Assembly (NCBI GenBank): GCA_001179505.1
Contig: CDMY01000625.1
Location: 1-40,834, forward strand
Source of the DNA: Vitrella brassicaformis CCMP3155
Lineage: Eukaryota; Protista; Chromerida
DNA: 40,834 nucleotides
Reading direction: 5' to 3'
The notes below the pieces were generated by a model. That model was not told the DNA's origin. It searched no databases and saw only the letters and a list, made by a program, of their open reading frames with translations. The position numbers and the translations under genes are program-made. Every line of letters begins with the position of its first letter. Position 1 is the stretch's first letter. Below are positions 1,323-27,900 of the stretch, one piece after another.

Positions 1323-3250
1323 ATGAGAGGCGCTGGTCAATGTGCATATGTTCTCCTACGCTGTGTGGACCTTGGCATGAAGCTCGTCGGCCCGCTGCTG
1401 GTCAGAGAGAGAAGAACCCAATACATGTGATAGGTGTCTGTCATTGTGTCTGTGTGTGGTGTTTGTGATCAGATATTGTTTGCTTTCGGCCTTTATGGGT
1501 TCATAGCGTATTCGTTCTTTGCCTTCATCGTCCCGTACGAGCCGTGGCCGGCGTGGCAGCGCACCCTGCTCTCCTTGGTGGGCATCTTCCTGCTCGCAAA
1601 CATCATATACAACTACCTTGGCGCCATCTTCACAGGTCAGTCACCATCACCCACAACATATGTGACCGACACCGACGCATGAGACCCACGGGCTGTTTGC
1701 TGGCTTCTCGTCGTGTGTGTGTCTGTTCGATGTGCAGATCCGGGCAGTCCGCCAGAATATGGAGGGGTAGGCTTCTAGGCTGGAGGAACACTTTCTTCTG
1801 TCGATTGGCGAGTGTTTGCAAACTGTGTGTGTGTGTCTGGTGTGTCCTGTCCCTTCAGACTGAGATGGAGGAGGGCGCTGGGATGGGGGGGCTGGGGGAT
1901 GAAGTCAAGCAATGCCAAAAATGTGAGGTGACGCATACCGACGGACGACATTCGTGTGGCCTGTCTTCATTCCATGCATGTGTGATGTCTGTCATGCCTG
2001 TCTGGGTGTCAGGTTCTCGCTTGAAGCCTGCCAGGTGTCACCACTGTAGCGTGTGCAACCGATGTGTTCTCAAAATGGACCATCACGTAAGTAAATCAAT
2101 GACGACAGAGGAGACAGAGATGGCATGCCATGGTCGATCCGATCGCTGCGTGTGTGGTGGTGTGGGGTGTGTGTGTCTTCAGTGTCCCTGGGTGAACAAC
2201 TGCGTCGGTTTCCACAACTACCGGTACTTTTGGCTGTTCCTCGTCTATTTGGCCATGGGCTGCACTTTCGTCATCGCAACTGTCGCCAGGGCCTTCTATG
2301 TCGCCATATTCACACCGGTCAGTCAGTCAGCAGACGAGACGCCCGCAGACACAGCATAGCCCTCACCCACTTGTGTGGTGGTGCACGTGTGTGTGAATGA
2401 ATGGCTATGCAGCGTCAGTCTGAGTTTCCTTTCTTCGGCCGGCAGTGTGTGGCCCTGACATTCGTCATCTGCTGTGCGGTGCGCAACACGCCCTGCCAGA
2501 GAGAATGTCTGTGTGCACGACACATATGTCATGTCATGGCATGGCATGGTGTGTTGTGGTCCTGTGTGCAGATTGAGTTGGCCATGTGTGTGTTGGCGAC
2601 CTTTCACGTCTACCTGGCCCTCACGAACCAAACCACTCTCGAATTCCAGGTAGCTGACCGACACAGTGTGCACGGGCACTCACTCATCTCACTCATCGTC
2701 ATGTTTGTGTGCAGCTGAATCTGCACACACGGGCGAGGGCCAGGTGGAATGGAGTGGTGAGTCAGCACACACACACGGAGGGAGGGGAAGCGACGACACG
2801 ACACACGTGGATCCTACCCCTTCCTTCTATCGCTTCGTTTTGTGTGTCAGAATTTTCGCAATCCCTACGATCTGGGGCGGAAACGAAACATGCAGCAGGT
2901 GTTCGGGCCATCAAGGTGAGTCGGTCTCTCTCACACGCTCTGATTGATGCGCTGCTCTATCAAGGAGACAGTCGGATGCATCCGCCTGCGTGTGTGGGTG
3001 TGTATGCAGGTTTCCAATATGGATGATGCCTTACTTGGCCGAACCACCAGAAGGTAGGTGCCACCTACTCAATACATGACGCCATTCACCATCCACCCAG
3101 CCACCACACCGCGTGTCATGAATCCCTGTCTCCCTCGATCCTTCAGGGGATGGTTTATCATTCCGAGCGCTGGGCAAGCCGGCCGTTCTGCGGCTGCCGC
3201 AACGACCGAAATGCGACCGACCAGCGACCCACAACGCAGCAGCAGGATGA
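1323..3250 (+). CDS. DHHC-type palmitoyltransferase (protein S-acyltransferase), multi-exon
   Basis: Spliced exons give [26 protein letters not shown]|[10 protein letters not shown]...NYLGAIFT|DPGSPP...CQKCE|...[21 protein letters not shown]|[20 protein letters not shown]...|[16 protein letters not shown] (TTxE motif)|...[16 protein letters not shown]|...GDGLSF...TGA 3248-3250. The DHHC cysteine-rich domain is intact. Confidence 0.95.
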
Positions 3251-3556
3251 TTGGTGGATGGATGTAAAGAGGGAGGAGGTGTGGTGGGGTGGGGTGTGTC
3301 GGTCGGTCAGTCAGGAAGAGCACTGTCTGTCTGTCTGTCTGTTGGTTGTGCAGCATGGCTTAGTGTGTCTGGTACAGTGTGTGTTGTACGTGTGTGTACT
3401 GACTTGTATAGGGGCGGGCAGTCGGGAAACAAACATGTACACACATGCATATATGCAGCAATCAATCTTGTTTTTATCAATCAGTCAAGATTGCTTGTCG
3501 ATCACATCAACCGACATCCGACCTTTCATTATGTATTGCATCCATCCGCCAGTCGG

Positions 3557-6500
3557 TCAGGTGCCCTGTGCGATAAGCTGTCTTGTGCGCTGCATCTGCT
3601 CCTGGAACATGGCCTCCTGCTCACGCTGACGCACAAACGACTCCTCAAGGGACAACTGCCCACACAACACACATAACACGGATCCGCACACGTCCCCCCA
3701 CCATGCTCATCCCTCTCTCTCTCTCCCACCTGCAGCTGGCTAATCTGCACAGCCAGGTCGGCCTTGTCCTGCCGGAGCTCATCCACTGACTCGTGTGTCT
3801 TGCCAGGCCCTGGCCGTGACGCCAGGAAGCCCCTCAGAGAGGCACTGAGTGTTGCGGGCGCTGTTGTGTCGCCGTCGTGTATGTGCCTCAGGTAATACAG
3901 CGCCTCCTCACAGGCGGCAGAGGCGCAGTGGAGCCGACCCTGGTAGAACGAATGCACAGATAGATAAGATGGTCGTGTCTCCGCGTCCCTGTCAATTACC
4001 TTATCCAATTGCTCTTTGGCCTCCGTCAGTCTCTCCCCCGCCACCTCAAGCAGCACACCGTCCCACTGGGCCTCCCAACCACCATCACCATCACCAGCAC
4101 CAGCCTCGACAACCCCCTCCCCCTCCCTCTCTGCCTCATCAGTCTGCGACGGGGCGGTCGTCTGTCGGGCTGGTTTCCACTCCCAGCCGTAAGCAGCGCC
4201 GTATGTGGTGGGGGCCTCTTCGCCGGGAGCTTTGGGGAGCGGGTGGCTGTAGGCCTTGACGGGTGGTTTGGGGGGTGTGTGCTGCACTGGTGGCGGCTGC
4301 AGGGTGTCGCTTCGCGGAGGGGGCGGGATGGGAGGGCCGAATGGCGGTGGCTCTGCTGACTGGGCGTCGCTTGGTGGCTCCAAGGGCTGCTCAGGCTGCG
4401 AGGGAAGGCGGTCTTCATGTTCAGGCATGTGCGGCGAGAGAGAACGAGTCTCCTTCTTCTTCGGATGCGACCAAGGACGGTCCCTGTCTCCCTCTCCGTC
4501 GCTGACAACCCCCCTTCGCCTGTCGCGCCGCCTGAGCATTGCATCCTGTCGCCTCTGCCGCTTCTCATCGCTGCCGCTGAGCTTCTTCTCCAGATGCTCA
4601 GCCCGCCTGTTGTGTGCACACCGGCTGCAGACCCCCTTGGTGCCGCCGTCCCCGCCTCGCCGCTTCTCGCTCTTGAACGAGAAAACAAATCCACACCCAA
4701 AGCAGTCGAGCAGCTTGGTGCTTGGTGGGCGCCACGGGGTGCCTGAAGCCACGGAGCCGGGTATGACCTGCAGTGCCAGCTTGGCCTGCTTGACGCCCTC
4801 GGCCAGCCATTTCTGCCGCACTGACTCGATGCCCTCGCCACCTCTGCATGTGTGGACAAGACACAATGACATGGGGAACACGTGTTTGTGTCGGTTGCCT
4901 ACCCAGGGAAGCGGAGTTCGTGTGCGTAGTGGGCGTATGAGGAGTTTGGCGGGCAGCGATCCTTTTCCGCCGGCCGAATGATGACTCGTCTTGGAGGGGG
5001 GTACTCCTTCTTCTTGGGCTGCGGTGGTGGTGCCGCCGGCTGCTCCTCTCTCCGCGGCTCCCTCATGCTCTCCCTTTGTTTGGTCCGTGGCATCGCAGTG
5101 GCGGGCCGCACGCGCGTTTGGGGCTTCACCTGTGCTGATGGCGGTGGGGATGGTGCTGGTGCTGGTGACCGTGATCGCGGTCGTTTCGCTGCTTTCTTGG
5201 GCTCGGCGGATTTTGGCGCAGCTTTGATCATCGTCTTGGGCCTCTTCTTCTTCAGCTCTGCACGTGTCTCCGTCACATTCGCTTTTGGCTCGGGTGCTGG
5301 CGCGGATGCAGACGGTGGCTCTCCCCCTTCCATGGGCGGCGGGGCGGCGGCTTTGCCAGCGTGTTTCAGCCAGGGGTTCTCCTTCTTGCCGCCCTTCCGC
5401 TTGCCGCGGCACGGAGGCGAGGCGGAGCGGGCTCTCTGCTGCTCCTTCCCGGGTGATGGTCCCCTCTTGCCGCCTTTTGGCTGTTTCTCCTCCTTCCTCG
5501 CTACAGGAGGCGCCGATGCCGGCCGTGGTGGCGCCAGAGGAGGTAATGTCGACCTCTTCTTGCTGATGGGCGGCAAAGCGGATGGCTTCGGGCCACTCAC
5601 GGCAGGCAATGGCGAGGGCATCGCCGGCTTGGTAGTCTCTTCTGGTGTTTGTTGTGCTGATTGCTTCTTCCTTTGGTCAGCTGCCCTCTTCTGCGGCTTG
5701 ACAGCAGGGGGAGGGGGAGGGGGAGGGAGCTCTGTTGGGGGAGGGGGTGGCGGTGGATGAGGTCGCTTGCCAGGCTTGGATATCACGATTGGCATCTTGG
5801 CTGCCTTGCGCTGGAGCTCCTTGGGGCGGAACTGTGTCTTGAATGGGAAACGGTCGATGGCGATGGGGCAGTGTGTGCGCTGCAGCGACTGCAGGTCACG
5901 CAGACGGGAGTGGCGTTCACGGTAGACTTTCTGCAGACAGAGGGCAAGACAGAGAATCCTCCCAGCAGCAGTGCTCTGTCTGTCTGTCTGTGTGTCTAAT
6001 GACTGACATTGATCATCTTGTTGAGGTCATACACTCGTCTGAGCAGCGCCACCGAGCCGGCATGGTCAAAGGTCTCATCCCTCCTGCATCAACAACACAC
6101 NNNNNNNNNNNNNNNNNNNNNNNNNNNNNNNNNNNNNNNNNNNNNNNNNNNNNNNNNNNNNNNNNNNNNNNNNNNNNNNNNNNNNNNNNNNNNNNNNNNN
6201 NNNNNNNNNNNNNNNNNNNNNNNNNNNNNNNNNNNNNNNNNNNNNNNNNNNNNNNNNNNNNNNNNNNNNNNNNNNNNNNNNNNNNNNNNNNNNNNNNNNN
6301 NNNNNNNNNNNNNNNNNNNNNNNNNNNNNNNNNNNNNNNNNNNNNNNNNNNNNNNNNNNNNNNNNNNNNNNNNNNNNNNNNNNNNNNNNNNNNNNNNNNN
6401 TGGACAAGACACAATGACATGGGGAACACGTGTTTGTGTCGGTTGCCTACCCAGGGAAGCGGAGTTCGTGTGCGTAGTGGGCGTATGAGGAGTTTGGCGG

Positions 6501-18789: not shown

Positions 18790-20543
18790 TCAGATGGCCA
18801 CCACGACCCAAGCGGCAACCATCAGGCAGCCCACGATGAGGGCCAACCCAATGCCCTTCCCACCCGTCCCCGAGTCATACTGATCTTGGGTGTCCTGTCT
18901 GTCGTCGCCTGAGCGTCGGAAGCACTGCGGGCCGGCCTCCTCGTCCTCCTTCCAGCAGCAGTTGAGCAAGCTGCAGCCATTCTCGTCCACATTGGAGCCC
19001 CCGCAGGGCTGTCTGTCGGCTTCTTCGACAGCGCTGCACAATCCCCTGGGCGTCCCGCCGGGGCTGATGCCTTCGAAGAAGATGGGCGGATCGGAGTTGA
19101 TGGGCTGCCAGGCCGTGTGGATCCGAGGGATTGTCGTGTTGAGCACCTGGCCCTGAAGAGACAGAAAAGAGAGCAGACACACATGATAAGACAGGCACAC
19201 AGGCACACAGACGGACAAGGAGGGAGAGACAGCTCCTCCTACTCAGCCCCCACAGTCACTCAGGTACGTACCTTCAGTGACGTGATGCGCACACTGTAGG
19301 GCGGTTCTATTCTTCTTTGCCCGCCTTTGAGGCCCGTGACTTCTGTCTTGAAGACGAACACCCCAGCCGCCCACTGATCCATGGTCCACCACCTGTCGGA
19401 CCCCTTGTGGTATACCTGTCGGGTAAATAGCGTGCCCAGTTTGCTCGTAAAGTAGTTGATCTTTCTGCTCATGGACGTACCTCAACCTTCCGGGGCGGAA
19501 TGGGCATGTTGCGCACTTGTATCTGCAAGGCAAGAAAAAAAAAAGACATGTAGACGACACGAACGAGCGACTGATTTGTGGTTCTGTCTGTCTTTCTTTC
19601 TTTCTTTCTTTCTTTCTTTGTGTCTCCACTTGCCTACCGACAGGAAGTGCGCATTGTATCCGTTGTTTCCTGTCGAAGTGCCAGGATCAAATGCGAACTG
19701 GACGGGCTGCCCCCCCGAGTCGCCTACCGTACGTACAAAGACGGACACATGGACATTCATCGACAGTATGCGCATCGATCGCTCACAATCAACGGCCACC
19801 CACGTCGCCTGAAACTTGCCGCCTCTGCTCCCATCGGAGACATCAAAGTGGCCGGAATCGCATTCCTAAACACACACGCCGTGCATATTTCTCCTTGCCT
19901 TCCCTCCTCGCGCCTCGATCTCAGCCCACTGAGCAAGAAGCAAAGCACTTACTTATAGGACATTGGTTGTTGGCGAAGACCTTGAATTTCTGATTCTGAG
20001 GCGGAATGTCTGCATGCACCCAGCCAGAATATCCCCTATCGTGCACAGCAAGACGGTCTTCACTCGCCTACCACTCTCTTGGCCACTGCCAGGCGTGCTC
20101 TTGTCGCTCATCCCAATGTTGGTGTGGAGCACCTCGAAGCACATCCCGCATCCTCTGCCGTCGGCGAATACATCGGGAGGAAGCGCAATAGTCCTCCAGA
20201 TCCCATTCGCTGCACCCGAAGTCAGGAAAGCGTCAAGTATCGCCGCACACGGAGGGCTTCCTGACTGACTTACTGCCAGTGGGTGGGTCAGGATGGATCC
20301 TGCATTGCCCTCTGTCGGCGTCGGTGAGGTCCCAGTAGTACGTGAGGGCACCTGAAGCACCCAGTGGCACACATACCAGCCAGCTCATCCATTCACATAC
20401 ATCTGTATGGACAGGGCGTCCTGACCTTCTCGGGGGGTGGAGTACAGATTGAGCAGCGTGTTCCACGCATCACCAGTCACTTCACAAATGAGGCCGAGAG
20501 AGGCCACAAGCAACAACACACAAAACATCATCTTCACAGGCAT
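18790..20543 (-). CDS. Secreted expansin-like protein (DPBB + CBM63-like) fused to a trefoil (P-type) domain and a C-terminal transmembrane helix
   Basis: Exons: MPVKMMFCVLLLVASLGLICEVTG (signal peptide); GALTYYWDLTDADRGQC; IALPPDVFADGRGCGMCFEV; KFKVFANNQCP; ECDSGHFDVS...ATWVAVDC; IQVRNMPIPPRKVE; RWWTMDQ...PPYSVRITSLK|GQVLNTTIP; CSAVEEADRQPCGGSNVDENGCSLLNCCWKEDEEAGPQCF; GIGLALIVGCLMVAAWVVVAI*. One splice junction has a phase problem (see findings). Confidence 0.85.
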
Positions 20544-20547
20544 GCAT

Positions 20548-20573
20548 GGGGGCCGTACCCTCCCCCGGCCCCC
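20548..20573 (+). repeat. Left terminal inverted repeat
   Basis: GGGGGCCGTACCCTCCCCCG-G-CCCCCA. Confidence 0.85.
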
Positions 20574-20702
20574 AATGGGGGACCAGGGGGTCTCGAACCC
20601 GGAATGGGGGAGCCCCCCCAGGGGGGTCGAGACTGGGGGCCTGTGTGGGGGAAGTTGCGAGGATTTACCGGAGTACGTTGCTGAGATGAGCAGCTAGTAG
20701 CA

Positions 20703-23017
20703 ATGGACCAAGAAAGGTCTGCATCTTCGCGGAAATCGCTAAATTCTGAGATAGGGGGGGAAGTAGAAGTCGTCTACTTTAAGCTGAAGGTGCTGAAGGG
20801 TCAGAAAGCTCCCTGGTTTTGCTGTCCATTCTACATCTGTGAGCGCCTGTACTTGCCGTCATGCCCCTTCATGGAGCATCTGCTGGCCGAGAAGGCGGCG
20901 GGGGCGTGGCCGGAGGAGCCGTGGGTGCTCACTGGCAGTGAGGCCTTTTTCGAGCGTTTCGAGATCGATCGACACCAGTGTGCTCACCACCCAGGACGTG
21001 CAGACCCTGTACAACCAGAGGAAGAGAGGCTTCGTAACCTTTCGTGAGCATCAGCACAGAGGGGGGCTGGACACAAAGAGAGCGTCTGTATGTGCTGTTG
21101 CTTACTGTTGCTTATTCAGGCAATATTCAGGCAATGCCGTGACAGATCCCCAGCCATCGGCCAACAACACTGGCCAGCAGACGGTAAGTTCTCGCACTCA
21201 CCATCGAGTTGAAGAGAAACCAAGCCGTCTGCTGTTCCTTCAGCCCACTGGGTCTCCTCCCGGCGACGCGGGCTCTGCTCGCGCAGCGGCTAGGCCCACT
21301 GGGTCTGCCGACGAGGCGGGCTCTGCTCCCGAAGCGGATCAGGGGCAGCAGGTATCACTCCCACATCTCATATCAACAGGGGATCCACACCTGTGTTTTG
21401 AATGGACCATTGACGGATTGGTGTGGTGCGTGTGTGCCTGTTTGCGTTGTGTGGTGCAGGTGGGTCGTGCTGCATCGTACCACACCTCTACGGACCAAGG
21501 GCAGGTAAGTCGACAACACCAAATCCACCCTCACCGAGTGTATGAATCGTCTCTTTGCTGGTCGATGTGGGTGTCGCTTTCAGGGTGGTCGTGACAGCGG
21601 TTTGGCGTCCCCGTCGGCCGTGCCGTCGCCACCAGCACCAGCTCCTGCTGCCGCCGCCGCCGCTGCTTCGTCATCCCAGGACCAACCTGATGTTCCGTAT
21701 GCTCCCATGGTGCGCACGTGCTTGCACAGATCTCCATCCATTGCGTGGTGGATGCGTGTATGTATTGTGTGGGGCCTGTCTGTTGTGGGTCAACAGGAGG
21801 TTTCTCCCTCTCCCTACGAGTCCGAGCAGGTACACAAAACTGACCCCCATCCAGCGGCACACAACCTCACCCATGGTGCTCTCTGCTATGTGTATGTATG
21901 GATGTGTGGCTGTGCAGCGGGACGACAGTGGGTCGGGGCACACGTTGTCGAGTAGTCGCCCGCACCAACAGCAAGACCAGGCCCACCAGGTACGGAACCC
22001 CACATACTCTCCGTTTGTTCCACCTTGTTTGATGGCTGGATTGGTGTGGTGCGTGTGTGCCTGTTTGCGGTGTGTGTTGCAGGTGGGTCGTACTGCATCG
22101 TACCACACCTCTACGGACCAAGGGCAGGTAAGTCAACAACACCAAATCCTCCCTCACCGACTCTATGAATCGTCTCTTTGCTGGTCGATGTGGGTGTCGC
22201 CTTTCAGGGTGGTCGTGACAGCGGTTTGGCGTCCCCGTCGGCCGTGCCGTCGCCACCAGCTCCTGCTGCTGCCGCCGCCGCCGCTGCTTCGTCATCCCAG
22301 GACCAACCTGATGTTCCGTATGCTCCCATGGTGCGCACGTGCTTGCACAGATCTTCCATCCATTGCGTGGTGGATGCGTGTATGTATGTGTGGGGCTTGT
22401 CTGTTGTGGGTCAACAGGAGGTCTCTTCCCCTCTCTACGAGGCCGAGCAGGTACGCGAAACTGACCTCCATCCAGCGGCACACAACCTCACCCATGGTTC
22501 ACTCTGCTATTTGTATGGATGGATGTGTGGCTGTGCAGCGGGACGACATTGGGTCGGGGCACACGTTGTCGAGTAGTCGCCCGCACCAACAGCAAGACCA
22601 GGCCCACCAGGTACGGAACCCCACATACTCTCCGTTTGTTCCACCTTGTTTGATGGCTGGATTGGTGTGGTGCGTGTGTGCCTGTTTGCGGTGTGTGTTG
22701 CAGGTGGGTCGTACTGCATCGTACCACACCTCTACGGACCAAGGGCAGGTAAGTCGACAACACCAAATCCTCCCTCACCGACTCTATGAATCGTCTCTTT
22801 GCTGGTCGATGTGGGTGTCGCCTTTCAGGGTGGTCGTGACAGCGGTTTGGCGTCCCCGTCGGCCGTGCCGTCGCCACCAGCTCCTGCTGCTGCCGCCGCC
22901 GCCGCTGCTTCGTCATCCCAGGACCAACCTGATGTCCCGAACGACAACAAAATCGAAGTGCTTCCCGTTGGCAGCTCCGACGGGGCGACCTCACCGTCAA
23001 TGCGGCATGAGAAGTAG
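20703..23017 (+). CDS. Hypothetical low-complexity protein assembled from tandemly repeated exon cassettes
   Basis: ORF from ATG 20703 (VVYFKLKVLKGQKAPWFCCPFY...), then exons NAVTDPQPSANNTGQQT|PTGSPPGDAGS...QGQQ| and a repeated set of four phase-0 exons, ending QPDVPNDNKIEVLPVGSSDGATSPSMRHEK* at 23017. The first splice junction was not resolved. Confidence 0.6.
21415..22935 (+). repeat. Tandem repeat of a ~622-bp four-exon unit (2 full copies plus a partial third)
   Basis: aggtgggtcgt.ctgcatcgtaccacacctctacggaccaagggcaggtaagtc recurs at 21458, 22081 and 22702 (periods 623 and 621); introns are also near-identical. Confidence 0.92.
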
Positions 23018-23937
23018 TCGGCGGGGCCTCGCCAACCCTCCTGAACGATGAATGTGCCATAGCAAGGAGTTTGTTCCGGCCGCCCTACACTGCGTACAGA
23101 AACCGTTGTGTTGCGAGCCTGCGGAATGCAAAGCGGAAAACTGGCGAGGAATCGCCCACGGCATACATGTCGACAGCAATGAGCATCAAAAGAGACGTCA
23201 ACCAACAAGGGGAACAAAACGCTTCATTTGACATTGCAGAGATATCGCAAGAACACTGCCCGGAATTGGCCCGGAATTCAACCAATGGGAGCGTACAGAA
23301 AGCCTGGCTGCCGTAATTGATGCGCGGCTATGTCACGGGACGGGGAATATATGGGCAGACATATCCTGTGATTATGGGCGGAAGATTCAAAGGATCGTCG
23401 AAGTTTCGACCATGGCACCTGTATTGATTCATCAGTGCAGCCCCAGGAGTCGATCTTTCTGCCTCCTCACCCGTGACTCTGCCGGGAGGCAAGAGATTTT
23501 GGCGGGGGGGGAGGAAAGAGCGGAAACAAGGATTTTTTTCGCTTCTACACAGCAAGAATGGCTGGCAGGGGCATGATTGACGGAGAGTCGATTTCTTTTG
23601 GGTCACGATATTGAATGACAATGAAGGCAGAGACAGGAGACCGTTGGTCTATATGCAGAGAACACCAACAGGGCTACACTGGATGGTTCTTTGCATTGCA
23701 CTGCGAATCGAATTCGCAAGAGAGCAGAATCAAAGGGCAGGCTGGCCTAAGGCAGCAGACACAGGGGAGCTATCTCAATCTATCTGTGTCCAGTGAAAGC
23801 GAAAAATGTCGCAAGAGTCATTGCACTCAGAGATGGTCCATAGAGGTTATCGAGATCAACTTCGAGCGATGCTCGGACGGCTGTGCGCCGAACCGACCAA
23901 GCTATAGCAGCAGTCAGCCGAAGAGTCACGAAGCTAA

Positions 23938-24612
23938 CTTAAGGAAGCAGCAGTAATTGACACATATAAGATGATGGCGCACGGCCTGTTTACTTTTGCC
24001 TCACCGGCATTGTTTTCAGCAGGCCTCGTACGTCAGCAGATAGCGTCTTGCTTCCTGGTGAGCACAATCGACGGGAGCTGTCAAGGTCTGTTGGAGACCG
24101 TAAAGCAATGTGCACAGGTCTCCCATATGGGTGGCGGCATCGGCATTGCCCTACACGACATCAGAGTTGAACACTCACGCCGAAAGGGCGACATGGGTAC
24201 ATTGGGTGGAGTGCTTTCGTACCTGTCGGTGCTCAACCCAACCATGCAGATAGCCGACCAATGCGGCAAACGCAAAGGGAGCCTGGCGGCGTTTCTGGCC
24301 GATCACCACATGGATCTTCCAGCCTTCCTGCAATTAAGGAAAAATCAACAACAAGCAGGAGAAGTGCGCGCAAGAGAAATCTTCACTGCGGCATGGATTT
24401 CTGACCTGTTCATGGAGAGGGTGAAGAATGATGCACAGTGGACTCTCTTCGACCCACTACAGGCGCCCGGCCTTGCCAATGTCTTTGGCAGGGAATTCGA
24501 GGACTTGTATCATCGCTATGAGCGAGAGGGGAGGGGAGGTAGGGTGATTGCTTGGGCACGATTGACTCGATTCTCTGACGAGTCACTCAAGGCCACCTTC
24601 TTCGTGACGTGA
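23938..24612 (+). pseudogene. RNR1: Intronless internal fragment of class I ribonucleotide reductase large subunit
   Basis: AAVIDTYKMMAHGLFTFASPALFSAG..QQIASCFL..KQCAQVSHMGGGIGIALHDIR..DQCGKRKGSLAAFL..RAREIFTAAWISDLFMERVKNDAQWTLFDPLQAPGLANVFGREFEDLYHRYEREG corresponds to the RRM1/NrdA segment from AAIETY..THASPTLFNAG to EEFEKLYASYEKQG. In-frame TAA at 23935-37 upstream; homology is lost after ~24550. No ATP cone and no NxCxE motif. Confidence 0.85.
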
Positions 24613-24625
24613 CTGCAGACGCTAC

Positions 24626-24808
24626 TGCTGCAGGGCTCCCCTGTTGAAAGTGGGACCACCCCTCCAGGACGGAGAGGGCTCCCCCAATGCTGATGCAAAG
24701 CTCCCCAGCTGGAGAAAGACCTCTCAGGAACAGAGAGGCCTCCACCGAGTGCTGCAGGGCTCCCCTGTTGAAAGTGGGACCCCTCCAGGACGGAGAGGGC
24801 TCCCCCAA
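24626..24808 (+). repeat. Subterminal ~60-bp direct repeat pair (24626-24687, 24750-24808)
   Basis: tgctgcagggctcccctgttgaaagtgggacc(acc)cctccaggacggagagggctcccccaa occurs twice and differs by a 3-nt indel. Confidence 0.9.
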
Positions 24809-24852
24809 ACAGAGATGGGGGAGGGGGGTCGAGAAGCGGGGGAGCAGGGGAG

Positions 24853-24878
24853 TGGGGGCGGGGGAGGGTACGGCCCCC
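24853..24878 (-). repeat. Right terminal inverted repeat
   Basis: Reverse complement reads GGGGGCCGTACCCTCCCCCG-CCCCCA. Confidence 0.85.
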
Positions 24879-24920
24879 ATACAATATTACAGCTTCATAT
24901 TCGCGGCGCCTCCCGAGGCG

Positions 24921-27900
24921 ATGGGGGCGCAAAAAGTCGAGAAGGCCGAAATAATAGTACTAGCATCTCCCGTCATGGGCATCATTCTTGCCGTCCTCCC
25001 TGGACTCCTCTCTGTCTGTGCCGCCCTCCCCCGGCTGAACATTGACCGAGTCCTGAGCTGCCGAGGGCCGCTGACGGACTGCCCCGGCGCCTTCGAGGTA
25101 CCGGCGGAGACCTTGTCGACGGCAACAGACTGCTCGGTGTTGGATGACCCGGCAGAGTGCGATCAGGAGCAAGAACCTGATGACGCGGATGCAGACGACA
25201 AGTTGTTGAGGGGGCTCGGGAGGAGGAGGCCGCAGGACGATCATGTGCCGTCAGCTGAGAAGTTCCAGCTGAAGCACAGTGTCCATCCAGTGCTAAGTGC
25301 GCCGAGGGTTGCGGTCGATTATGACGGCGATGGAGCGGAGGTCGTTATTCTTGACGTGAGCGGGAGGGAAGGTTCTCGAAAAGCGTTGACGGTCTGCCAT
25401 GGCCGCTTTGTGTCTATATGGTGCAGGGCGACCAATCCCACAGTCACGAGACCAACGCGTGAGCACATCACACACACGAGGGACAATCCCGTCACGCTGC
25501 GAGGCTTATGTGTTGCAGTGATGGTGCTCTGGTGATATCCCGTTGGCAGTGGTCCGTCAACAACACGACCATGTCTGACGGCAAGCGCGAGATCCACTCG
25601 GCCAGCCTGCCCCTCGGCCGTCACTGGGTGCGGCTGAAGGTGCACGACAGCTCACGTCCATCCAAGCAGGAGGAGGTCGGCACATATGTGGACGTCGTCA
25701 GGCCCGACAAGGTGCCTGGCGTACAGGTGTGGCTCTACTCGCCCAACGTGGCTGACAACCCTAGCATTGAGAAGGTGAGAAGGAGCGGACGCAAGCAAGC
25801 ACCATGGCAGCCCGCTGAGTCTGTCCCTTGGTGTTTTTCCAGATGCTGCACAAGAGCCCAGAAGACCTGGCAAAGGAGCTCACCCCTTCCTTCGTCGGCA
25901 AGTCCTTCACGTCTTTCTCCATCCCAGTGGACCAGAAGAGCGGCAACCTGGCGGGCTCAGGGCTCAGCAAAAACGTCATGGCCAACGTGCGCGCCAAAAT
26001 TGTGCTGGACGAGTCGATCAACCCGGATGGCGAAGTCACAGTGGAGCTGCCTGGCGTGACCAAGGCCGCCATTCTGATCAACGGTTTGCCGGTGAAGTCG
26101 GGCGAGGCCATCAGCCTGCCCACCAACACCACTGCCGACTTCGATGTGAGGTTTGGTCTGAGTGATCGGGCGACTGACGTGCCGTCTGTGGAGGTCAATA
26201 GGAAAGCAGTGGAGGCCTTCGCTGCCGACGATGTCGTCGCTGACGGTGTGCGTGTGTTCCACGACGAGACGGCCATGAAGCCCCACATCAACGCCATCAC
26301 GCCCAAGCACGCCCCTGTGGGCGAGACGAAATCCGTCACCATCACGGGAGCGGGCTTCATCATGCCACAAGACAGCAAGGCGCTGCGCGTGGTGATCGGG
26401 GGGCGCAACGAGTCCCTCATACCCACCCAAGTGTCGCCGACACGCATCAAAGTGGACATGCCGGCGACACATGCCGAGCACACCTATGGCGTCAGCGTGG
26501 CATCGTCGCGGGGCAATTCCAACTGGGCCGAGTTCAAAGTCTCTGCTGCCAGCTCAAGCATGCCCGAGATCAAGTTCCACCCACCTACGGCTATCCGCAC
26601 TAAGGCCCGGCCGACTGCTGGTGCTTGGGGCGTTGACAACCGCTTCTACATGGGAAGCATGGAGGGGCTGATAGAGGTGAGTGGCTGATGGGGGGCAGGC
26701 AGAGCAGAGCAGTGAAGTGAAGTGGCACACAGATTGGGTGGCGCATCATGGTGTGGGCAGGTATATGACTTCGATATGGACTACAACGTCAAGAAGAAAC
26801 AGACGCTGAAGGTCATTGACGAGAAGTACCCCGGCGACACCATACTCGGCATCAGGGCCGACCCTTACAGCGACCCCGAGAAGCAGCACCTGTACGTCGC
26901 CCACTCCAACCTGGGCGCAGCGGTATGCCACCCACCCACACAGAGCGTCGGCTCACACCATGTGTTCATCCATCAGGGGGGCAATGACTGCGAGGTCACG
27001 AAGAAGCACGGCATGGTCTTCCCCGGCCGCATCAGCCGCATCACCGGGCCAGACTACACCAGAATCGAAAAAGTGGTGACCAACCTGCCGGCAGCCAACA
27101 AGGGAGGGCTTGGACCAAACGGCATCGACTTCGTAATGAGCAGCACCTCCACACACAAATGGGGGCAAGAAACACTTGTGTGTGGATGTCTCTGTGTGTG
27201 TGTCAGTCGCTGGATGGCGACCTCTTTTGGGCTCAGGCGTCCGTCGGCAACGGCGGCCCCCCCGTGTGCTTTCTCGGCGGGCTGCAGGACTCGCCCCTCA
27301 CCGCATCCGTCAACAGGGCCCAGTTCCGCCGACCCGACTACACACCGGATATCGACTACGTGTGGAAAAACACCACCGGCATGATAGCCAAGGGGCTGGC
27401 GAACAAGAGGGCACCCAACGACCAGCGTGAGGCGTCCAGCTACAGCATCGCTCCTTGGGTCAAGGGCATCGAGTGGTACGCCGCCGGCTTCCACAATCCA
27501 TTCTCAATCGTGTGGACGACTGATGGCGAGTTGTGGACCACCACCAATGGCCTCACTGGCGGCAACGCTTGGGACACCACACAGATACCCGAGTACATCA
27601 AGCGCATGCAGGAGGGATCCTGCGCATGGCCTGAGTGCCAGCCGCCTGCCAAATTCAGGAAATCAGTCGACAGGGTGGGTGGGTGCGTGGGTGGCCGGGG
27701 CGGAGAGAGAGAGAGGTGCATCCACTTTGCTGCCATGGCGTGTGTCGTGTGGTGATGTGTGGTGATGTGTGCAGGTGACAGGCCCGCTCAATTACAAGGA
27801 CTATGGGGGGTATCCCAACCCAGCGAGGGCACTGGAGGGCGACGAGCGGCAATGGTACTACTTCTCGGCTGCCGACCCGCCCAACCCCATGATATACAAA

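Follow-up and report, generated by a model that had tools for sequence, protein, structure and literature searches.

A low-copy, transposase-less DNA element in Vitrella brassicaformis and its probable link to a KDZ transposase

The window analysed in this study is a stretch of 40,834 nucleotides from Vitrella brassicaformis CCMP3155 (positions 1 to 40,834 of the forward strand of contig CDMY01000625.1, assembly GCA_001179505.1). Between two divergent genes, the window contains an element of 4354 bp, designated copy A, which spans 20537-24890 and reads 5'-CAGGCATGCAT ... ATACAATATTAC-3'; coordinates given without a contig name are window positions. From left to right, copy A consists of a region with an open reading frame (ORF), an array of tandem repeats, a 358-bp piece, a fragment of a ribonucleotide reductase (RNR) large-subunit gene, and a region with subterminal repeats. 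Pfam searches revealed no transposase domain within copy A, and the window showed no similarity to KDZ, which confirmed by domain searches the absence of a transposase stated in a preliminary description made from the sequence alone. That description had taken the element for a Pack-like transposon that was related to ISL2EU/PIF-Harbinger and carried captured host gene fragments. The results described below suggest that copy A is probably a member of a low-copy family of cut-and-paste transposons linked to a KDZ transposase gene.

Ends of the element and target-site duplications

The exact 20-mer GGGGGCCGTACCCTCCCCCG was located at 20548-20567 on the plus strand and at 24859-24878 on the minus strand. 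Even when up to three mismatches were allowed, these were the only two matches in the window, where the chance expectation was 0.02, and the perfect 20-bp inverted repeat that had been reported 4.3 kb apart was thereby confirmed. The repeat, previously given as 26 bp with one indel, was extended by a repeat finder to 30 nt with 93% complementarity; its left arm lies at 20543-20572 (plus strand), including the 20-nt exact core, and its right arm at 24854-24883 (minus strand).

The 20-mer was also searched for in the whole assembly (72,700,666 bases in 1064 contigs), in which six exact sites and one site with a single mismatch were found, while the reversed control pattern gave none. The sites correspond to three copies (A, B, and C), every one flanked by a 7-bp duplication of its own, and to a solo end of 46 bp. 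The motif is thus multi-copy, and its sites pair into elements with differing interiors; together with the duplications, these paired ends support the view of the preliminary description that the element is a non-autonomous mobile DNA transposon.

Alignment of all the copies showed that conservation begins at CAGGCATGCAT (20537-20547, plus strand) and halts at ATACAATATTAC (24879-24890, plus strand), with unrelated flanks outside. The left outer terminus did not vary among the three copies, and the right one was unchanged in these and in the solo end as well. When the sequence was read outward from the seven genomic 20-mer sites, CAGGCATGCAT was reached at three of them and the reverse complement of ATACAATATTAC at the other four. 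The ends proposed earlier (20546 and 24880) are wrong, because conservation across the copies puts them at 20537 and 24890. The dinucleotide AT does adjoin the outer side of both 20-mer arms, as had been pointed out, but it does not act as a 2-bp target duplication: conserved sequence continues 9-10 nt farther out in every copy, and AT lies inside the element, where it belongs to the imperfect repeat (TGCAT...ATACA). Over their outer 6-7 nt, the two ends showed no inverted match to each other, the outer 6 nt on the left lying outside the repeat, and the inverted repeat is hence subterminal. The element accordingly has asymmetric termini with an inverted repeat of 26-30 nt just inside them.

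Two other types of ends were rejected. LTR-like TG..CA ends at the repeat edges were ruled out, since the conserved sequence and the duplications lie farther outward. Single-strand folding of the ends gave only weak z-scores (-1.6 and -2.5), which disfavour, together with the duplications, hairpin-dependent ends such as those of IS200 or Helitron elements.

Directly outside the termini, copy A is flanked by ATCTTCA (20530-20536) and AGCTTCA (24891-24897), which match at six of the seven positions. The duplications of copy B (AGCCGCT, on contigs C97 and C642) and copy C (CGCATTT, on contigs C312 and C512) match at all seven positions, and their placement relative to the termini is identical to that in A. 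A target-site duplication of 8 bp can be read only if the invariant terminal C is counted as part of the target, in which case the matches become 7/8, 7/8, and 8/8. The 7-bp reading appears simpler and is preferred here.

The ATG of a minus-strand gene (MMFCVLLLVASLG..., signal-peptide-like) lies 9 nt from the left end of copy A, and that of a plus-strand gene (MGAQKVEKAEII...) lies 30 nt from its right end. In the reconstructed empty site (20520-20536 joined to 24891-24925), these two start codons are about 35-45 bp apart. Copies B and C are located approximately 210-270 bp upstream of genes pointing away from their left ends; the gene beside B (L010:1753-1977, plus strand) has a kinase-like start, MALKGHNALASGRF...GAGGHSTVFKA, and that beside C (L046, from about 6900 onward, plus strand) is an ORF beginning with MTKRARTAANAS. 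The position of B and C upstream of genes heading away from them suggests that the family prefers insertion into 5' regions.

Copies B and C and the KDZ transposase gene

Copy B (2448 bp) was rebuilt by joining the start of C97 to the end of C642 through an exact overlap of 148 bp (L010, C97:1-148; L014, C642:37430-37577). A and B share only the regions corresponding to 20537-21303 (92% identity) and 24516-24890 (85-95%); their middles, 3212 bp in A and 1050 bp in B, are unrelated. In the left subterminal part of B (L010:1411-1450), a run of about 40 G, a length-variable homopolymer, stands in place of GTGTGGGGGAAGTTG of copy A.

Copy C, which is at least 7.5 kb long, is split between C312 and C512. 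On the minus strand of C312, its left end (C312:6634-6540) is followed by a gap of 300 N, one 621-bp unit with 99% identity to A, 4.9 kb of unique sequence, and finally a segment (C312:741-1) equivalent to the middle of B (positions 790-1534, 98%), all in one order and orientation. The first 270 nt of C512 (C512:1-270) are 100% identical to the last 270 nt of B and are accompanied by the matching duplication. C312 and C97 end at the identical element position (L046, C312:1). The left 95 bp of A and C are 97% identical and the last 72 nt are identical in all three copies, whereas the wider right-end alignment shows 84% identity (270 nt) because the numbers of subterminal repeats differ.

The deletion junction of B was clean, with position 789 on the left joined directly to position 5894 of C, and B is therefore an internal deletion of a C-like copy. 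Overall, the copies are 92-100% alike. The likeness of 98-100% between B and C points to recent activity, and the imperfect duplication of A, together with its 92% identity to B, suggests that A is the oldest insertion. In the public assembly, at least four contigs (C97, C312, C512, and C642) end because of the repeat, so that the ends defined here explain these assembly breaks and can also serve as a search key for annotation of the family. The solo right end of 46 bp is on C189 (L048:6113-6172, C189:146112-146171), where CTGGAAA lies outside and the inner side is joined to ...CTGAAAAGC. It looks like a remnant of deletion or excision, possibly through CTG microhomology with a lost second copy of the duplication.

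Within its unique 4.9 kb, copy C contains an open frame resembling the core of a DDE transposase (...IGDKTSGILVAIHPCG...IIYDDACHL...VIDRVHQSGH...NSEV). In the exons, which are divided by a GT..AG intron on the plus strand of the element, D (IGD), D (YDD), and E (NSE) can be read as candidates for the DDE triad; the upstream part of the gene may lie in the N gap. In the ESM Atlas, a C exon was placed among KDZ clusters with a score of 0.95 and 181 shared features. A single close paralogue of the frame was found in the genome, on C550 (59% identical). The spliced transcript protein of this paralogue, P0158 (229 amino acids), is available from MMETSP, a public marine-eukaryote transcriptome set, and it matched PF18758 (KDZ) with 32.5 bits (cut-off 26.6, E 8.8e-8) over profile positions 51-217. 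The two exons of C were 62% and 64% identical to P0158 (E 8e-61). Furthermore, conservation between C and C550 at the protein level was confined to the transposase frame, which is a sign of coding constraint. Hence, one pair of sites does enclose a DDE-type transposase-domain gene, of the KDZ type, so that the genome check proposed in the preliminary description came out in its favour.

The C550 locus (C550:47456-53065) is a diverged paralogous KDZ element or gene reaching the contig end. C550 and C775, a contig to which part of copy A is related (see below), were searched for termini like those of the window family, and none were found.

The interior of copy A and its transcripts

Subterminal motifs rich in G5/C5 and an ORF with its start at 20703 lie in the left region common to A and B (20537-21303, plus strand). 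An 11-bp deletion shifts the frame of this ORF in A; the ORF is intact in B and in the transcript protein P0157, and it gave no Pfam match and no usable match in the ESM Atlas. Exactly where the likeness between A and B ends (position 767 of A), a 48-bp tandem duplication was observed at 21243-21337. It is followed by an array of roughly 2.5 tandem units, each about 621 bp long (21415-22975, plus strand), one of which is the unit also present in C. Pfam searches of the repeat region and of the middle of B gave no matches. The tandem repeats with splice-like signals noted in the preliminary description are thus present, but their interpretation as a captured, spliced repeat-exon gene was not supported: the repeat region, like the left ORF, is shared with the transposase-bearing copy, and we infer that it is the element's own 5' part.

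The 358-bp piece (23016-23373, plus strand) matched only C775 (C775:3991-4341, 91%), the flanks of which are homologous to the region downstream of the KDZ gene on C550. C775 also contains other repeat families (L012:718-1051, 842-1050, and 3146-3351), namely a unit of about 335 bp, of which at least 20 copies with 80-87% identity were found, and pieces of about 205 bp in numerous copies (93-98%). The right region common to A, B, and C (24516-24890, plus strand) comprises the last 32 RNR codons and the 60/124-bp subterminal repeats at 24626-24808. When the whole genome was searched at the DNA level with the element, only the family copies and C775 were found, and there was no host parent locus for any internal segment.

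The RNR fragment (23971-24612, plus strand) is an open frame of 213 codons derived from a class I large subunit. It matched positions 1-161 of the 523 positions of the barrel domain PF02867 (E 2.6e-44) and corresponds to residues 194-385 of yeast Rnr1, confirming the presence of an RNR fragment in the element. The genome has two intron-rich host genes for the RNR large subunit (C309:39461-42576, plus strand, and C279:41407-44608, minus strand). These genes are split by introns where the fragment is intronless on its sense strand, and their proteins are 39-51% identical to it; neither gene is its source. Among 1.84 billion representative proteins, none was more than 49% identical to the fragment; the relatives, all at or below this level, came from metagenomic records, and no donor could be named.

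On the right, the likeness of A and B breaks off within the RNR homology (LYHR / YEREGRGG), and the last 32 RNR codons are retained in B and C with 97% identity. These results indicate that the common ancestor of the copies already had the fragment. Several positions conserved among RNRs were altered in the fragment: DQGG was replaced by DQCG, and the GS.I.GTNG stretch was unrecognisable. The fragment is therefore best read as an old, decayed passenger relic and not as a Pack-type capture, and it would have no enzymatic role; its frame, which is recorded in UniRef as an RNR domain protein, should not be read as a gene. A more specific scenario, which we regard as speculative and unlikely, is that an ancestral chromerid KDZ transposon took up a foreign RNR passenger, viral or from another eukaryote, in a manner likened to the fungal KDZ elements that carry TET/JBP genes, and that today's copies, which retain its relic, now donate promoters and 5' leaders to the genes beside their insertion sites through bidirectional, spliced transcription from their ends.

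Several proteins in databases are derived from the element, namely P0001 and P0153 (JGI) and P0151 and P0152 (MMETSP; UniRef A0A7S1K393). The left ORF (P0157) and the RNR frame occur together on a single MMETSP transcript, 36052. Comparison with these proteins revealed five introns with GT..AG borders. A 99-nt intron on the minus strand (21007-21105) and a 60-nt intron on the plus strand (21184-21243) are absent from P0157, and three introns on the minus strand, of 71 nt (23934-24004), 72 nt (24151-24222), and 78 nt (24328-24405), are absent from P0001, the latter two being within the RNR frame. Indeed, when these three segments were excised and the sequence was translated locally, P0001 was obtained exactly. 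The RNR frame is antisense to three of the four minus-strand introns. Since introns with GT..AG borders occur on both strands, both strands of the element seem to be transcribed and spliced, and unstranded transcript assemblies are likely to combine them. Metagenomic contigs, from which records of V. brassicaformis may have been left out, gave no match when they were scanned with protein sequences and with junction patterns.

Some of the transcript proteins were mosaics of the known copies. Compared with 20703-21290 of the window, P0157 has an A-like N-terminus, while its middle is intact and B-like. The RNR frame in P0152 and P0153 is that of A, except that the TGA stop of A is replaced by the TGG of B (24600-24650). 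These mosaics indicate that at least one further copy or allele, which is absent from the assembly, is expressed.

Origin of the element and comparison with known systems

Taken together, these findings suggest that the window element is copy A of a low-copy, KDZ-linked family of cut-and-paste transposons, which lacks a transposase and is presumably moved in trans; we put the probability of this reading at roughly 75%. It is carried by the ends, the duplications, the genome census, the deletion junctions, and the KDZ homology of the gene in copy C, and it supposes that the transposase of C is complete and would be the enzyme moving A. In such a process, a KDZ transposase from a C-like copy would bind in trans to the terminal regions shared by A and B (about 100 bp at the left end and about 70 bp at the right, rich in G5/C5 motifs), excise the element, and insert it elsewhere through a cut staggered by 7 bp, frequently a short distance upstream of genes. 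Copy A itself is a derivative shaped by internal deletion and rearrangement, in which terminal regions of about 770 bp on the left and about 375 bp on the right are retained; B arose from a C-like copy by internal deletion alone, and the RNR piece is best read as a decayed passenger inherited from the common ancestor of the copies. The element is thus a real but ordinary transposon, not one assembled by host-gene capture.

Several points weigh against this reading. Copy C is not contiguous, being interrupted by the 300-N scaffold gap after the left end and by a contig break before the right end, and the region of A at 22940-24515 is absent from its assembled part. The copy number is only three to four. 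The KDZ domain is visible only from profile position 51 onward, and the C transposase may be incomplete or inactive. When single genomic exons of C, searched one by one, were compared with Pfam, no significant match was obtained, even for the KDZ exon; a six-frame search of the genome with PF18758 also gave no matches, but it was uninformative, as control genomes were equally silent. The 3' terminus is AC, whereas TG is reported for Kyakuja. Finally, an empty site was looked for without success: pre-insertion patterns for the insertion points of A and B had no match in the assembly.

An extension of this reading, which does not exclude it and which we consider possible but rather unlikely, is that copy A is an exapted regulatory insert providing promoters and 5' leader exons to the two divergent genes. 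The short distances of 9 and 30 nt to the flanking ATGs are consistent with this idea, as are the transcripts covering the element with introns of both strands and the location of B and C just upstream of genes. However, the same splicing was seen in a second variant (P0152/P0153), which points to promoters borne by the element itself.

Less probable is a second explanation, in which the family belongs to another superfamily with 7-8-bp duplications (hAT7-like, P, or Mutator-like), the KDZ gene on C312 being nested, of host origin, or a scaffolding artefact, and the true transposase being elsewhere or lost. The interruption of copy C by the gap and the contig end leaves room for such an explanation, the KDZ domain looks short at its N-terminus, and the left terminus begins with CAG, as many hAT ends do. 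Nevertheless, sequence internal to the duplication-bounded copies A and B lies on either side of the KDZ segment in the correct order and orientation, and the deletion junction of B maps onto this segment. In addition, the 358-bp piece of A is tied to a locus beside the paralogous KDZ gene. Transposable elements of Vitrella were reported to total 1.5 Mb, with 0 bp classed as hAT (PMC4501334), and the 7-bp duplication and the 5'-CA fit Kyakuja.

A Pack-like PIF-Harbinger/ISL2EU element, with the 20-26-nt terminal inverted repeats as its ends, 2-bp AT duplications, and captured host fragments, is very improbable. AT adjoining both arms, the lack of an internal transposase, the RNR fragment, and the interiors varying among the copies are what had made it attractive. 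On the other hand, conservation extends 9-10 nt beyond AT and stops sharply before matching duplications of 7 bp, in place of the 2-3 bp (TA, TWA, or AT) directly outside the repeats in PIF-Harbinger and ISL2EU elements, and the linked transposase is KDZ and not DDE_Tnp_4. The cargo has no host parent locus, the RNR fragment is older than the separation of the copies and reaches only 39-51% identity to the host genes, and no fragment with the high nucleotide identity to a host parent that marks Pack elements was found; both the affinity and the host-gene capture put forward in the preliminary description were consequently rejected. An immobile segmental duplication or recombination-prone repeat bounded by an inverted repeat by chance would fit the low copy number and the lack of an empty site in the assembly, but it is the least credible of all, given three copies in unrelated flanks with identical sharp boundaries and their own 7-bp duplications (chance per match about 6e-5).

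Returning to the KDZ-linked transposon family, its place among known elements can be considered from its domain, duplications, and termini. Fungal Kyakuja elements have 7-bp duplications and 5'-CA..TG-3' ends without terminal inverted repeats, and Zisupton and Dileera have 8-bp duplications, with proper terminal inverted repeats in Zisupton; a TET/JBP passenger gene is common among KDZ elements (PMC12730594). In the Vitrella family, PF18758 is represented in the putative autonomous member through the exons of C and P0158, with only profile positions 51-217 covered, and a duplication of 7 bp, within the 7 or 8 bp of the KDZ group, was found in three copies. The 5' CA of Kyakuja is present, but the 3' end is AC, and a 30-nt repeat of 93% lies just inside the ends. 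A keeps both ends of the transposase-bearing copy and lacks the transposase, as expected for a non-autonomous derivative. The family would accordingly be placed in the KDZ group, closest to Kyakuja without being Kyakuja proper. As far as we have found, no earlier KDZ-linked family is known from an alveolate for which the ends, 7-bp duplications, and a transposase-bearing copy together with its deletion derivatives have been defined, and this one indicates that at least one KDZ lineage has moved fairly recently in Vitrella, a genome with very few transposons.

Like Pack-MULE and Pack-CACTA elements, copy A lacks the enzyme, holds a gene fragment between transposon ends, and is transcribed. It differs from them in having no host parent and only a single fragment, which is old, shared among the copies, and highly diverged. 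A closer parallel in organisation is provided by Ds (of Ac) and dSpm, since A and B retain the terminal regions of a transposase-bearing copy without the enzyme, and B is a simple internal deletion; unlike these elements, A is not a simple deletion of C as assembled, because it keeps the ancestral RNR and 358-bp pieces that C lost. With Zisupton and Dileera, the family shares the PF18758 transposase family and cut-and-paste movement with long duplications, but their duplications are 8 bp and Zisupton has proper terminal inverted repeats, whereas the window family best fits 7 bp.

The likeness to Kyakuja, represented by Kyakuja-1_LB and Kyakuja-2_LB of Laccaria bicolor, lies in the 7-bp duplication, the 5'-CA, the lack of a strictly terminal inverted repeat, the KDZ-family transposase, and the presence of a passenger, which is TET/JBP in the fungi and an RNR relic here. 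In contrast to Kyakuja, the family has a 3' end of ...TTAC and a strong inverted repeat of 26-30 nt located 6-7 nt inside the ends, its host is a chromerid alga, and its transposase gene is split by introns.

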